Source: Entomortierella parvispora E1425 (lineage: Eukaryota > Fungi > Mortierellomycota). From it: a DNA stretch of 64,000 nucleotides. The stretch covers positions 1,426,001 through 1,490,000 of the forward strand of contig BQFW01000010.1 in assembly GCA_020891255.1 (NCBI GenBank), in the 5' to 3' direction. Made by a program: the position numbers and the translations under genes. A model generated the notes under the pieces. It saw only the letters and a list, made by a program, of their open reading frames with translations. It had not been told where the DNA came from and made no database searches. Of this stretch, positions 9,083-26,585 are shown one piece after another. Positions within the stretch are counted from its first letter, which is position 1, and every line of letters begins with the position of its first letter.

Positions 9083-11017
9083 CTAGGCGGCCATCTCCTG
9101 CTGCTCCTCGGCCTGAGTCTGTCGCTGCTTCAGGACAAGCTCGTTGCCAGTCACACGCTTATAAAGGTCCTTGACATCGTCGCAAACAGTCTCAAAGTGA
9201 GAAGTGGCATCGTACGATCTGGAGACAAAGACGTTGTCCTGGCGACCATCATGGATGGGCTCGCAAATGTCGGCAATTTGAACGAACCTAATGATATAAT
9301 AGAAAGACGCATATAAAAGTCAGCAAACTGTATCAGAAGACAGGTCATCTGTGCCTGAATAGAATTGAATTGAGGCGTACTTCTCAACAATGGGTCCAAG
9401 GAGGTTGAGACCGGGCTGGATCTCCTCTTGTGGGTTGTCAGTTTCGATGATGGTCGAAACAATGGCGAGGTAGTGGTTCTTCTCGCAGACGTTGTGCGAG
9501 GCAGAGACTCCGGCAATGTAGATATCGTTCTGGCGCTTAACCTGGTTCTGGGGGATGATCAGCTGGAACGAGTCCACGCTATCGGTGTTGGGGATGGGCC
9601 CATTGAGCATGCAGATGGCACGAATGACACGGTTAACCTTGTGGACCTTCTCGGGAGCATAGGAGGGGTCGCAGATGACCTGGTTGCACTTGGCAACTTC
9701 ATCGCCGCAGCGAACACCAACAACCTTTCCGTCCTCGTAGATAATCTCATCCACCTTCTTGTCCAACATGTAGGTACCTCCATAGATGGCACTCAAACTG
9801 CAAGCATTTTGCGCATATGGAAATGAAAAACAGCGTTAGGAACAGCCAAGAAACGAAAACTGGCATCTAGTGACAAAGGTATACACATACCGAGCGAAAC
9901 CCTGAGGAAGCTCGCCAAGACCGTAAAGAGGGTACAAGTAAGGCGACTTGCCCCAACGAGCCATTGAAGACATGTACAAGGTGATGCGGTCAAAAGTCTC
10001 CAAGGCAGGGCGGTTAATGTAGCTGTATTAGGATGACAGAGAAAAGGATGTCAATAAATGACTAGATCAATCATATCCCTTCCCCTCGACTCCGTATTCT
10101 GCGCGTAAACTTTACCTGTCATCCAAGTGGAGGGCAAGGGCGTGTCCAATAAAGTCAATGGTGCCAGCCTCGAGTCCAAAGTATTTGTAAACGGCCTCCA
10201 TGGGGGTAATGTTGATATCCATGCCCTGGTGGGTCGAGGGGTCGTCCTTTCTGTAGTTCTGGACAAACTCAAAGAACTTCTTGGCTCTGCGCTTCTCGAA
10301 AAGACCCATCAAGGGGGAGCGAACAGCCTCCATCTCGGTGGCAGGGACCTTAGCGATCCTGCCGTCACGGTAAACATAAGAGCCAGCAATTTGCTTGAAC
10401 TCCAAGTAACGGGTGACATCGGTGTGAGTCAAGATTTTGACCAATTCTCCGTTGGCCATCATGAACTTGGGAATCAAGTCAATGTTGTAGTCGCGGTCGC
10501 GTCCAAGCTTCTGGTCAGGGGTCTCGCCTTCACGGAACTTTCTGTAAATCTAATACCAATAAAAGAATATAATGTCAACAGGTCAGCTGTGCGGCTCATT
10601 TACTGTGGTTTCTTTATCGTGTATCTCCAGAAAACAGGTTGCTGTGCAACATCCCATGGTCACTTGTGCTGCCTTGGTTTTTTCACGCATTCATACCTGA
10701 GTCAACGTCAAACTGGCACTCTCGCCTCCATAGTAGTCATTGCGATCCATGTGAAGGACCTTCTTGCCCTCAATGGACAAGAGACCGGAAAGAATGCACT
10801 CGGTCAAACCGGTGCCCAAAACAACGACATCGTATTGCTCATCCTAGCCAAGGATGAAGAATGAAAGAGATTGTTTAGCACCTTGCACAAAAAAGAAGCA
10901 GGTTCGAACGCCTTCGACGTGATTCCTTCAGTTTATCCTCGACTGGCAAGTTATCCTTGCGCAGGTGGACCAGGAGGGGTATCTGTCCAATTGTCTCTTT
11001 CGCGATGCACTCACCAT
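9083..11017 (-). CDS. GDI1: Rab GDP-dissociation inhibitor, multi-exon, ATG-only first coding exon
   Basis: ATG|GTGAGT at 11017-11015, acceptor at 10844, then [45 protein letters not shown]; [36 protein letters not shown]; [10 protein letters not shown]; [17 protein letters not shown] at 9083-9085. Confidence 0.96.
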
Positions 11018-11507
11018 GGCTGCTAGTTGGAATGTTAGGGGGGTGTGTGTGGTGAAGAGAAGATGATGAGCCAAGAATGACTCGCATGCTTCCTTTCCCC
11101 TGGACCAGCACGCCTCCCTCCTGGACATGTGACGTCGAATCAAATGGATCACGTGAGTAAGTTTATTGGTGGCGCTTGAACGCGCTTCGCCGGGCGATAG
11201 CACTTGACGGATTGAGAATGAAGCCTCCATGAGCATTCCCTCCTGTCAAAATTAGATACACTTTCGTCGTTCTTTCCTTCAGTATGCTGGAACGCAATCA
11301 CGGTAATAGGTGTGAACATCTAAGGAGCGCTGGATTGGTCGACACGTGTTGTTTAAAACCCCTTCTCTCTCTCGTTTGAATGCCTGTTCCGAACACATTC
11401 ATTCTCAAGTAGCCTGTTCTGAATTGCATCGATAAAGTTTTTTTTTTATTGCCAAAGGGAGGAGCTCTCGACGAGAAGCCATAGGTGGAAGGCTAAAGAC
11501 GGACATA

Positions 11508-11672
11508 TTACATGCACTCGCAGCGATTGCCGACAGGGTAGCACTCAATTGGGCAGCGGCCAATGAAAGCTTCGGCCTCATTCACGCGACTGGGAGCGGC
11601 GGCGGCACCCTGAGACAGGAGAGCGACGGCAGAGAGGACCAGAACAGCAAGGGTAGGGATGGTGAACTTCAT
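11508..11672 (-). CDS. Small secreted cysteine-rich peptide precursor (54 aa), below the ORF-track cutoff
   Basis: MKFTIPTLAVLVLSAVALLSQGAAAAPSRVNEAEAFIGRCPIECYPVGNRCECM-stop. Classic MKF signal peptide, strong start context (TTCACCATG), C/T-ending codon bias like the highly expressed genes here, TATAAA about 105 bp upstream. Confidence 0.8.
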   Translation of the reverse strand: MKFTIPTLAVLVLSAVALLSQGAAAAPSRVNEAEAFIGRCPIECYPVGNRCECM

Positions 11673-11775
11673 GGTGAAATTAGGTGGTGGGTTGGTGGAT
11701 GATGTTGGGTGATGTTAAGGTATCAGAGGATTGAAGAGGAGGAAACAAGAATGGAAGCAAGATTCCATCCAGGAA

Positions 11776-11781
11776 TTTATA
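11776..11781 (-). promoter_or_regulatory. TATA box (TATAAA) of the peptide gene
   Basis: TTTATA on + at 11776-11781, about 105 bp upstream of the ATG at 11672, with a CA-rich leader between. Confidence 0.55.
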
Positions 11782-12959
11782 TTCTTTTTTTTTGTTCATG
11801 GACGGCATCCTTGGCCACAATATTCAGCAACAAGCTCTCCCTTCTGACCAAGTGTTTGACCTGTTAGTCAGGTAGTCGAATACCTAACTGCGATAATGGT
11901 GGATTCCAATCGAGAGCCTTCCATGACTTTTGCCACTGGATATGATGTTGGGAGATGCGTGTTTGTATCAATCACCCGTTACTTTCAAGTGGGAGAAGGG
12001 GGCAAACGATGTAACCAGAGGCGCGTTTCCAAGGGGGGCGAGGTGCCAGAGTCGAACTTTGGATCCCACACCCCCTGCATGCGAGTGCTTCCCCGGTAAA
12101 CAATCAGGGCGAATGTGGACAAGGGCGATCGTGGGCAAGCAGGAAATTGGTTTAATGCAGAGCTTCAACCGTTTTCATCTTTGCCTTCGCCCTCGTACGT
12201 TCTGTTCAGGATGCATGTCGCAAACGCTCAACGACATTTGCCCTTGTTTTTCTTCCCTTGGAATCAAGGACTCAAGGAAACAGTGAGCGGTTTTGTGTTT
12301 TGTGCCAGCAGACAAGGAAGATTCTATTTTTTCTATCTTGCCTATCGTACATGTAGAGCAAGACCATGCATGCCGCATGATTGTTCGTGCTTCCAGGTTT
12401 GGGGGGCATGGGTTGTTGACGAGAAACCAGCCCGCTTCTTGCCAACAAAAGTTCCCACGTCGAAAACATCAAGACAAGGGCCGACTGTTTGTCATTTGAC
12501 GAATTCCATCAAAAATAAGGAACATCGGCTTTGAATTGCATGGGGGTTTTTTTGTGCAACGCGTTCGCAAGGAACCAATCATGACGCGCGCTTTGTCACA
12601 AAAGAGAATGGTCTGTACACCGCGGATGAGCTTGAAAGATGCAGCCAGGGCTGGCCGTTGTGCATTACATCTATTGAACTGCAGCCCTCGGAATCCTAGG
12701 GTTCGTGGGACGTTCTCGGTGGTGCGATCTTTGCCCTCAATGCGCTCCTCTCGTTCAATATCAAACAATGGGGGCAAAATGGGGGGTAACGTGCTGGGTT
12801 GAATAGGATTGCGTCTCTATGTTTTTCATGTCAGTCGAACATTCTTTTTCATCAATACATTACGCGCAAGGGTTCTCATAGTGGGCCTTGGTACTAACGT
12901 CCAACTCCCTGAACTCCTCCGAGATCCTGCACTGACGAGATTAGAGCCCCTGTCTACAG

Positions 12960-25576: not shown

Positions 25577-25945
25577 GGCGGGGAGAAGAGCGCGCTGGTT
25601 CGCGTCTGGGTTCCGGTCAGCTGTGTCTCTTGTGTCCGTGAGAGGGAAGGAGGGAGAGGGAGTTCTTCTCTAGGGGGGTTTCTGATGAGGATGATGGGGA
25701 TGATGAGAACGAAGGGGCGAAGAGTGAAGGGAATGAATGGAAACGAGAGAAGGAGAAAAAGACTTAAAAAAAAGGAGAGCACTGGCCCAATGGGTAGGTG
25801 TTTGTTCAACGGGTCGAGTGATGGAGTTCACCCTGTCAGTCTGTCTGTCAGTCAGGCACTGTCGTCAGGCACCACCATCAGCCACTCGGATGAAGAGTTC
25901 TTTTTTTAACCTAGGGATTGAGATGGAGGGAGGAGGAAGATGAGG

Positions 25946-25946
<1 letters not shown>

Positions 25947-26040
<94 letters not shown>
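25947..26040. repeat. (TG)47 microsatellite with degenerate TG/TC extension to about 26090
   Basis: Perfect dinucleotide run of 94 bp. Confidence 0.98.
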
Positions 26041-26041
<1 letters not shown>

Positions 26042-26585
26042 ATGTATGTTGTGTGTCTGTGTCTGTGTTTCTGTCTGTGTGCGTGTGAATTGGAATCGGC
26101 CTGGGGGGCATGTCCGTCAGGGCAGTAAAGAGACAAAGAGTGCACCATTGCATCGACTGTTTGCACGGTTTGCACTGTTTGCACTCCACTCCACTCACCC
26201 CATGCATCCGCCCACGCGCACACCTCCTCGGCCTCTGTCTTTGCTGCCCTGTCTTTCTCTCTCTGTCTGTCTGTCTGTCTCTCTTGCCCCCCTTGCGCCC
26301 AAAGCGCTCTCCTCTCCTCTCCTCTCTCGCTTTGTCCCCGTCCATTTAACCTGTCTTGGTCGCCATCCATCCAGTTGCTTTTGCTCTCGCCCAATATCCC
26401 ACAAATTTCACCTTGGACACTGGCTCTGGCGCCGGGAAATGAACATTATCGCTGCTCTCTGATCCAATGTGCTCTCATCTCTCTTTCTCTTTCACCGCCA
26501 TCTCACCATTCAGTTTCAACAAAAGAGGTTTTAATGGTTCAATTGGTCCTTAACATATGGCTTTTTCTCTAACTTTGGGTACATT

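Follow-up and report, generated by a model that had tools for sequence, protein, structure and literature searches.

The window analysed here is a 64,000-nucleotide stretch of the Entomortierella parvispora E1425 genome (contig BQFW01000010.1, positions 1,426,001 to 1,490,000). It contains an open reading frame of 54 codons plus stop at positions 11508-11672, where a sequence-only reading of the same DNA had placed it; the strand, missing from that reading, is the minus strand. The encoded peptide starts with MKF, continues with a 17-residue hydrophobic stretch devoid of charge and then reads SQG. A signal peptide, the pro-region AAAAPSRVNEAEAFIGR and the core CPIECYPVGNRCECM follow one another in the precursor, with the TAA codon coming immediately after the core. 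The features of the locus are the following.

11775-11781, minus strand: TATA box TATAAAT, 109 nt upstream of the ATG (in the orthologue described below, TATAAAT at -106)
11673-11794, minus strand: promoter region and CT-rich 5′ leader, both retained in the orthologue (blastn island, alignment)
11607-11672, minus strand: predicted signal peptide, residues 1-22 (MKF...SQG), with predicted cleavage after Gly22
11556-11606, minus strand: pro-region, residues 23-39, AAAAPSRVNEAEAFIGR, whose last residue is the conserved Arg39
11511-11555, minus strand: core peptide, residues 40-54, CPIECYPVGNRCECM, C-x3-C-x6-C-x-C plus one residue
11508-11510, minus strand: stop codon TAA, kept in the orthologue; similarity stops here
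11445-11450, minus strand: AATAAA, a poly(A)-signal-like hexamer 58 nt past the stop
10694-10819, minus strand: first exon of a Rab GDP-dissociation-inhibitor (GDI) gene (Pfam PF00996, E 3.8e-20), a separate gene that serves as synteny anchor

The start codon lies in the context caccATGAAG, and the TATA box already pointed out in the sequence-only reading is retained in the orthologue. The signal peptide was called by a heuristic combining hydropathy, the residues at -1 and -3 and conservation in the seven genes of the family. Over the best 10 residues the Kyte-Doolittle mean reaches 3.06 and charged residues are absent, small residues occupy positions -1 and -3 of the predicted cleavage site, and residues 6-21 were modelled as a helix by AlphaFold. 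The pro-region, with a pLDDT of below 50-64 in the AlphaFold models, is variable across the family. The codon bias of an expressed gene, which had also been claimed, is present but modest in size: among the window's 279 small ORFs it takes rank 9 by codon log-likelihood, and its GC3 is 0.67 versus 0.52 +/- 0.10. A loose filter for a hydrophobic N-terminus and at least four cysteines was passed by 5 of the 397 ATG-ORFs of 35-150 aa in the window; only 11508-11672 is a clean prepropeptide, the other four come from a membrane-protein exon or from low-complexity sequence. At 25940-26128 the cysteine filter was misled by a long (TG/GT)n microsatellite, which yields a Cys-Val ORF when translated.

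An exhaustive profile search of protein libraries gave a single match, P0001, a 58-aa protein encoded on contig L026 from an ENA soil-type metagenome. Situated 0.7 kb from the P0001 gene is an uncalled 53-aa ORF (L026:2421-2582, minus strand), orthologous to the window peptide and having GRCPPDCFPFGGHCECM as its core. An identical contig (L027) was found in a JGI metagenome, and the source is a related Mortierellaceae species, seen in two metagenomes. The orthologue sits beside the Rab-GDI gene and is syntenic with the window gene. A blastn comparison of L026 with the window produced three collinear islands.

Window 10694-11140, L026:55-498: 5′ end of the Rab-GDI gene, 83% identity
Window 11508-11794, L026:2421-2702: peptide ORF, leader and TATA box, 71% identity
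Window 12437-12505, L026:3266-3333: short island with no assigned content, 77% identity

In the alignment, the TATA box, the ATG, the TAA and all four cysteines are shared by the two genes. The limit of the middle island coincides with the final base of the stop codon, and 3′ of the stop the alignment is interrupted by gaps of 13 and 32 nt, i.e. indels that are not multiples of three. Within the reading frame we counted 19 synonymous and 23 non-synonymous differences (Fisher p 8e-4), corresponding to a dS of 0.76, a dN of 0.22 and a dN/dS of 0.29 (Nei-Gojobori). By region the ratio is 0.065 for the signal peptide, 0.48 for the pro-region and 0.41 for the core. A second orthologue pair, P0001 and a gene on contig 6 of E. 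parvispora, gave a dN/dS of 0.32 (p 0.004), and all its indels are in-frame. This substitution pattern indicates that the reading frame of the window peptide is under purifying selection. The third island, 69 nt long and collinear with the peptide gene, is embedded in DNA that cannot be aligned and lacks any long ORF; candidates for what it represents are a small exon, an RNA and a regulatory element. We also considered that the peptide ORF might be an upstream ORF of the GDI transcript. This was ruled out, as an opposite-strand gene intervenes in the related species and the other family members do not lie near GDI.

The sequence-only reading had proposed a TBLASTN search for relatives with conserved cysteines. 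We ran tblastn on the genome (38.9 Mb, 20 contigs), using first the peptide and then the members found as queries, and in addition scanned 94 kb around the locus for further family members. E. parvispora proved to have four paralogues, three of which lie at a distance of 15 kb from the window gene.

C10:1419826-1420002, plus strand: 58 aa, Arg before the core absent
C10:1421045-1421242, plus strand: 65 aa, two tandem modules
C10:1422072-1422185, minus strand: 37 aa, signal peptide fused straight to CPPQCINVGGHSCEC
C6:166054-166236, minus strand: 61 aa, orthologue of P0001

The three C10 paralogues form a 2.4-kb cluster, and the GDI gene lies between this cluster and the window gene. A RiPP cluster was also considered and rejected: neither long ORFs nor modifying enzymes occur in the 10 kb around the three genes. 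The family as counted comprises 7 genes with 8 modules, 5 of the genes in this genome and 2 in the related species. The four cysteines are invariant in all eight modules with the spacing C-x3-C-x6/7-C-x-C, and every gene has the conserved signal peptide. Missing cysteine conservation in relatives, which the sequence-only reading had named as a refutation, is not what these genes show. The pro-region varies in sequence and in length, from 0 to 25 residues. The two modules of the 65-aa paralogue are divergent from each other, and the window gene corresponds to one module. The flanking signals recur as well: a TATA box at -68 to -120 in six of the seven genes (about 0.08 per gene expected by chance), a purine at -3 of the ATG in all seven, and AATAAA or ATTAAA within 150 nt past the stop in six. 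These comparisons point to a lineage-restricted family with five or more members in this genome and two in the related species.

The number of five is a lower bound owing to the limits of the module pattern search. This search of the genome with a short DNA pattern returned 21 matches against 5 in the control, and the real ones were the known members only. Seven of the matches belong to one repeat sharing an identical or near-identical 30-nt stretch that reads C-R-N-I-G-D-V/A-C-P-C (C2:3983399, C9:1870876, C11:2080311, C14:8996, C14:2193696, C14:2236577 and C14:2251419). A transposon or other dispersed repeat, without relation to the peptide family, is the probable explanation. As a separate observation, the P0001 gene (L026:1538-1714) adjoins GDI in the related species, lying between GDI and the orthologue of the window gene, and its own orthologue in E. 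parvispora is found on contig 6. A 33-nt upstream element is 91% identical between the two loci (L026:1314-1346 and L028:1845-1877, the latter being the contig 6 locus), which indicates relocation of the P0001 gene, or its differential loss, along with the promoter.

The family was previously undescribed, and both its sequence and its cysteine frame are new. Pfam holds no family for any of the seven members. No match came from word-index protein searches, whether the query was the peptide or a 2-sequence alignment, a protein search with a 4-sequence alignment recovered P0001 again and nothing else, and the ESM Atlas provided no usable match (score 0.76). Nothing was significant in a sequence-profile search of the PDB, the best matches being a squash trypsin inhibitor (E 0.3) and conotoxin vil14a (E 0.68). 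With the two-module protein as query, matches were insignificant or absent, and Foldseek against the PDB returned nothing below E 9. Similarity at the paralogue level amounts to 22-28 bits, which would be invisible in protein libraries of the size searched.

Exact look-ups of eight product variants in public protein sets all came back empty. Such an absence would be compatible with the window ORF having arisen by chance, being a dead gene or forming the first exon of a longer, spliced gene, but it may merely reflect that gene callers skip small ORFs. We consider these three possibilities extremely unlikely. Purifying selection acts in two orthologue pairs, start and stop are conserved, conservation ends at the stop and all the family ORFs finish right after the CxC; the dN/dS, the conserved stop and the similarity ending there make both a chance ORF and a spliced first exon very unlikely. 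Splicing at AT/GTAATA, raised in the sequence-only reading as a way of extending the product into a longer protein, is disfavoured on the same grounds, since the orthologue keeps the stop, the indels beyond it are not multiples of three and each ORF or module (7 genes, 8 modules) ends 0-1 residue past its last cysteine. Its central proposal, that an unannotated but genuine gene here encodes a secreted micro-peptide rich in cysteine, has held up through the orthologue, the paralogues and the purifying selection, secretion being predicted. To judge from these comparisons the window ORF is very probably a real gene, and 11508-11672 is likely to be an independent, intronless, TATA-driven gene for a 54-residue pre-pro-peptide. 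Synteny together with dN/dS can thus validate a gene of 54 codons without RNA data. In the metagenome contig, a 158-aa ORF was called by the gene caller at L026:2250-2726 on the plus strand, antisense over L026:2421-2582 on the minus strand. The databases consequently hold a spurious protein at this place, and the true one is missing.

The structure of the core was modelled in two AlphaFold2 runs, one with the full precursor (4 sequences) and one with the pro-region plus core (7 sequences). Both runs gave a β-hairpin with strands C44-V47 and R50-C53 and a turn at G48-N49, and no helix in the core; the pLDDT of the core was 78 and 85, a moderate confidence. The turn positions are rich in G, N and D in all modules, as expected for tight hairpins. 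In the modelled register Cys44 lies opposite Cys53, and Cys40, the first cysteine, is outside the hairpin. It would have to fold back to Cys51, and the presumed pairing would be Cys44-Cys53 together with Cys40-Cys51. According to the models, the core would fold as a β-hairpin rather than as a defensin-type cystine-stabilised helix.

The sequence-only reading had recognised in the cysteines the stabilised motif of defensins, and a miniature cystine-stabilised α-helix or CS-αβ fold of the defensin or toxin type would indeed accommodate the order CxxxC ... CxC and the weak profile match to vil14a. We nevertheless hold such a fold to be very unlikely. Just three residues, often including Pro-Pro, separate Cys1 from Cys2, the pro-region precedes the CxxxC, and Pro or β-forming residues come after it. 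Besides the hairpin seen in both models, the Pfam searches detected no defensin family and Foldseek no structural match in the PDB. The resemblance to the defensin motif is one of spacing only. A metallothionein-like protein was also ruled out, since a signal peptide is present and the cysteines are fixed in even number.

As to processing, Kex2 requires Arg at P1, prefers an aliphatic P4 and tolerates some non-basic residues at P2 (PMC8528282). In the family, Arg occupies P1 or P2 before the first cysteine in six of the eight modules (FIGR/C, VAGR/C, QPYR/C, ELYR/C, DQR/LC and, in the linker of the two-module gene, NR/VLC, the slash marking the putative cut). Four of these sites have F, V, V and V at P4, and the remaining two have Q or E. 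The P2 position is occupied by G, Y, Q or N, none of which is among the residues reported to be tolerated by Kex2 (PMC8528282). The modules of the 58-aa and 37-aa genes (two of the eight) have no such Arg, so that the cleavage site is uncertain; the Arg could instead belong to the mature peptide. A cut at the linker Arg followed by trimming of this residue would leave module 1 ending in C-V-C-N, which equals the CxC plus one residue of the single-module genes. The best argument for the core of 15-16 residues as functional unit comes from the 37-aa gene, which has no pro-region.

We infer a mature product of about 15 residues carrying two disulfide bonds. In the sequence of events that we propose, signal peptidase would cut after SQG (Gly22), and the 17-residue acidic pro-region would be removed by a kexin-like or other endoprotease after Arg39 (FIGR/C). 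The 15-mer CPIECYPVGNRCECM would be oxidised in the ER to two disulfides that would staple a tight β-hairpin, with the CPxxC turn folded back onto the hairpin, and the oxidised 15-mer would then be secreted. Kexin-type and DPP-IV-family homologues are present in the genome. Two adjacent loci with P_proprotein (kexin-type convertase) domains lie at C4:2515437-2520041; the second has stops inside the match and may contain introns or be a broken copy.

Alternatively, the mature product could be the whole 32-residue chain left after signal-peptide cleavage, the variable N-terminal tail being part of the active peptide. The core is not preceded by a canonical dibasic site, two family members do without the Arg and the P2 residues fall outside the known tolerance of Kex2 (PMC8528282), all of which would fit an uncleaved chain. 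We regard it as rather unlikely all the same, because a tail of 0-25 residues that evolves nearly freely is unlikely to carry function, the 37-aa gene manages without it, and the Arg recurs before six of eight modules, the inter-module linker included.

A further processing route, that of an α-factor-like precursor, was the one suggested by the sequence-only reading, with a Ste13-type dipeptidyl aminopeptidase trimming EAEA to give a 19-mer beginning FIGRC. Ste13 acts on a free N-terminus generated by Kex2, from which it removes XA/XP pairs, and the STE13 signature consists of XA or XP directly after the KEX2 dipeptide (PMC6339444). The EAEA is there, and so are DPP-IV-family genes, but EAEA is preceded by S-R-V-N without any Kex2 site, the orthologue reads KVEA at this position and the paralogues contain nothing similar, which makes the route highly improbable. 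It was already noted in the earlier reading that no dibasic Kex2 site exists, and indeed the window peptide has no dibasic pair; the RR of the orthologue, 12 residues upstream of the core, is not conserved. The 19-residue core of that reading gives way to a predicted product of about 15 residues, to which both the conserved Arg and the paralogue lacking a pro-region point.

With regard to function, the net charge of the cores lies between -2 and +1 in all eight modules. A classical cationic membrane-active antimicrobial is therefore unlikely, and the antimicrobial role that had been envisaged is disfavoured. Tachyplesin, protegrin and gomesin, host-defence peptides folded as two-disulfide β-hairpins, are strongly cationic and amphipathic with ladder-like C-C pairs. 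The cores described here are comparable to them in their predicted length (about 15-18 residues), in having four cysteines, in the tightly turned antiparallel hairpin that is modelled and in the signal-pro-mature layout of the precursor, but they are neutral to acidic and have no sequence relation to these peptides. Since the first cysteine lies outside the hairpin, the pairing cannot be a simple ladder as in the tachyplesin type.

Most likely, these are extracellular peptides that would act on other organisms or in cell-cell signalling. A secreted, disulfide-stapled hairpin peptide for biotic interaction would be the most likely role, with a probability approaching an even chance. The argument is one of evolutionary style: a conserved signal peptide, fast-changing loops on a fixed cysteine frame, tandem and module duplication, a gene position that differs between species and strong-promoter features. 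The main rival on this point is that the peptides are endogenous signals, pheromone-like or for hyphal communication, and not aimed at other organisms. Their near-neutral charge and small size would suit such signals, and α-type pheromones are among the Kex2-processed fungal peptides with conserved cysteines (PMC6339444). Repeats behind dibasic sites are absent from the family, on the other hand, a link to a receptor was not found, and several divergent paralogues per genome together with relocation fit interaction or defence better than a ligand of one receptor. We judge endogenous signalling unlikely relative to a role in biotic interaction.

Precursors of comparable layout are known from several systems. 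The legume NCR peptides combine a conserved signal peptide with a divergent four-cysteine mature peptide, are encoded by clustered gene families and occur in a host with intracellular bacteria. The fungal family resembles them in the signal peptide plus divergent four-cysteine core, in gene clustering and in a host that houses bacteria, but its cysteine spacing is different, there is no sequence relation and it is far smaller. The strain of E. parvispora carries a Mycoavidus endobacterium (PMC8759367). One might speculate that the family is a fungal counterpart of the NCR peptides, host-encoded, delivered through the secretory pathway and controlling or communicating with the Burkholderiaceae-related endohyphal Mycoavidus; such a function seems a very long shot.

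In framework XIV conotoxins (C-C-C-C; vil14a, PDB 6efe), the precursor likewise has a conserved signal peptide, continues with a pro-region that varies and ends in a tiny, hypervariable peptide with four cysteines. They are helical hairpins from unrelated organisms, however, and the GRC-x3-C resemblance to vil14a comes from a weak, non-significant match (E 0.68) with differing loop lengths, so that the analogy concerns precursor design alone. The K2PP effectors, fungal secreted proteins with a pro-domain processed by Kex2 (PMC8528282), are also built of a signal peptide, a short disordered pro-region and a cysteine-rich mature part and are lineage-restricted and fast-evolving; an Arg at P1 right before the putative mature part recurs in most members of our family. 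The mature part of the K2PP effectors, in contrast, measures 60-200 residues against about 15 predicted here, their pro-domain ends in KR, RR or LxxR, a motif that is poorly matched by the P2 and P4 residues of our family, of which two members have no Arg, and they come from plant pathogens whereas our host belongs to the saprotrophic or endophytic Mortierellaceae and the cleavage is only predicted. The Kex2-processed repeat proteins (KEPs) and α-factor-type precursors (PMC6339444, PMC7329392) are secretory precursors releasing short peptides, as is predicted here, and the two core modules with an Arg-containing linker in one paralogue recall their organization. The cores of KEPs are flanked by KR or RR (also KK) and are present as three or more near-identical repeats; here, dibasic flanks and a post-Kex2 STE13 signature are absent, and there are one or two modules whose cores contain four cysteines.

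In kind, the window peptide is an ordinary fungal small secreted cysteine-rich prepropeptide, and its mature product, at the predicted size, is unusually small for a fungus. Surveys of zygomycete fungi have reported thousands of unannotated SSP groups (PMC9391592). Peptides as small as this one are skipped by gene finders, which leaves the secreted micro-peptide repertoire of early-diverging soil fungi largely invisible. The family offers a compact 15-mer scaffold that is chemically synthesisable, has a new cysteine frame and comes with natural loop variants already in hand. It is directly testable on bacteria, including the endosymbiont of the strain, on nematodes, other fungi and plant roots. 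A very similar MKF...LVLSA signal peptide is found in a 109-aa ORF on another contig (L003:1501-1830, i.e. C1:633555-633884, plus strand). This ORF contains two repeats of CC-x6-C-x4-C, each with an AxRAxEAL tail, and would seem to encode a small secreted repeat protein of another cysteine-rich type.
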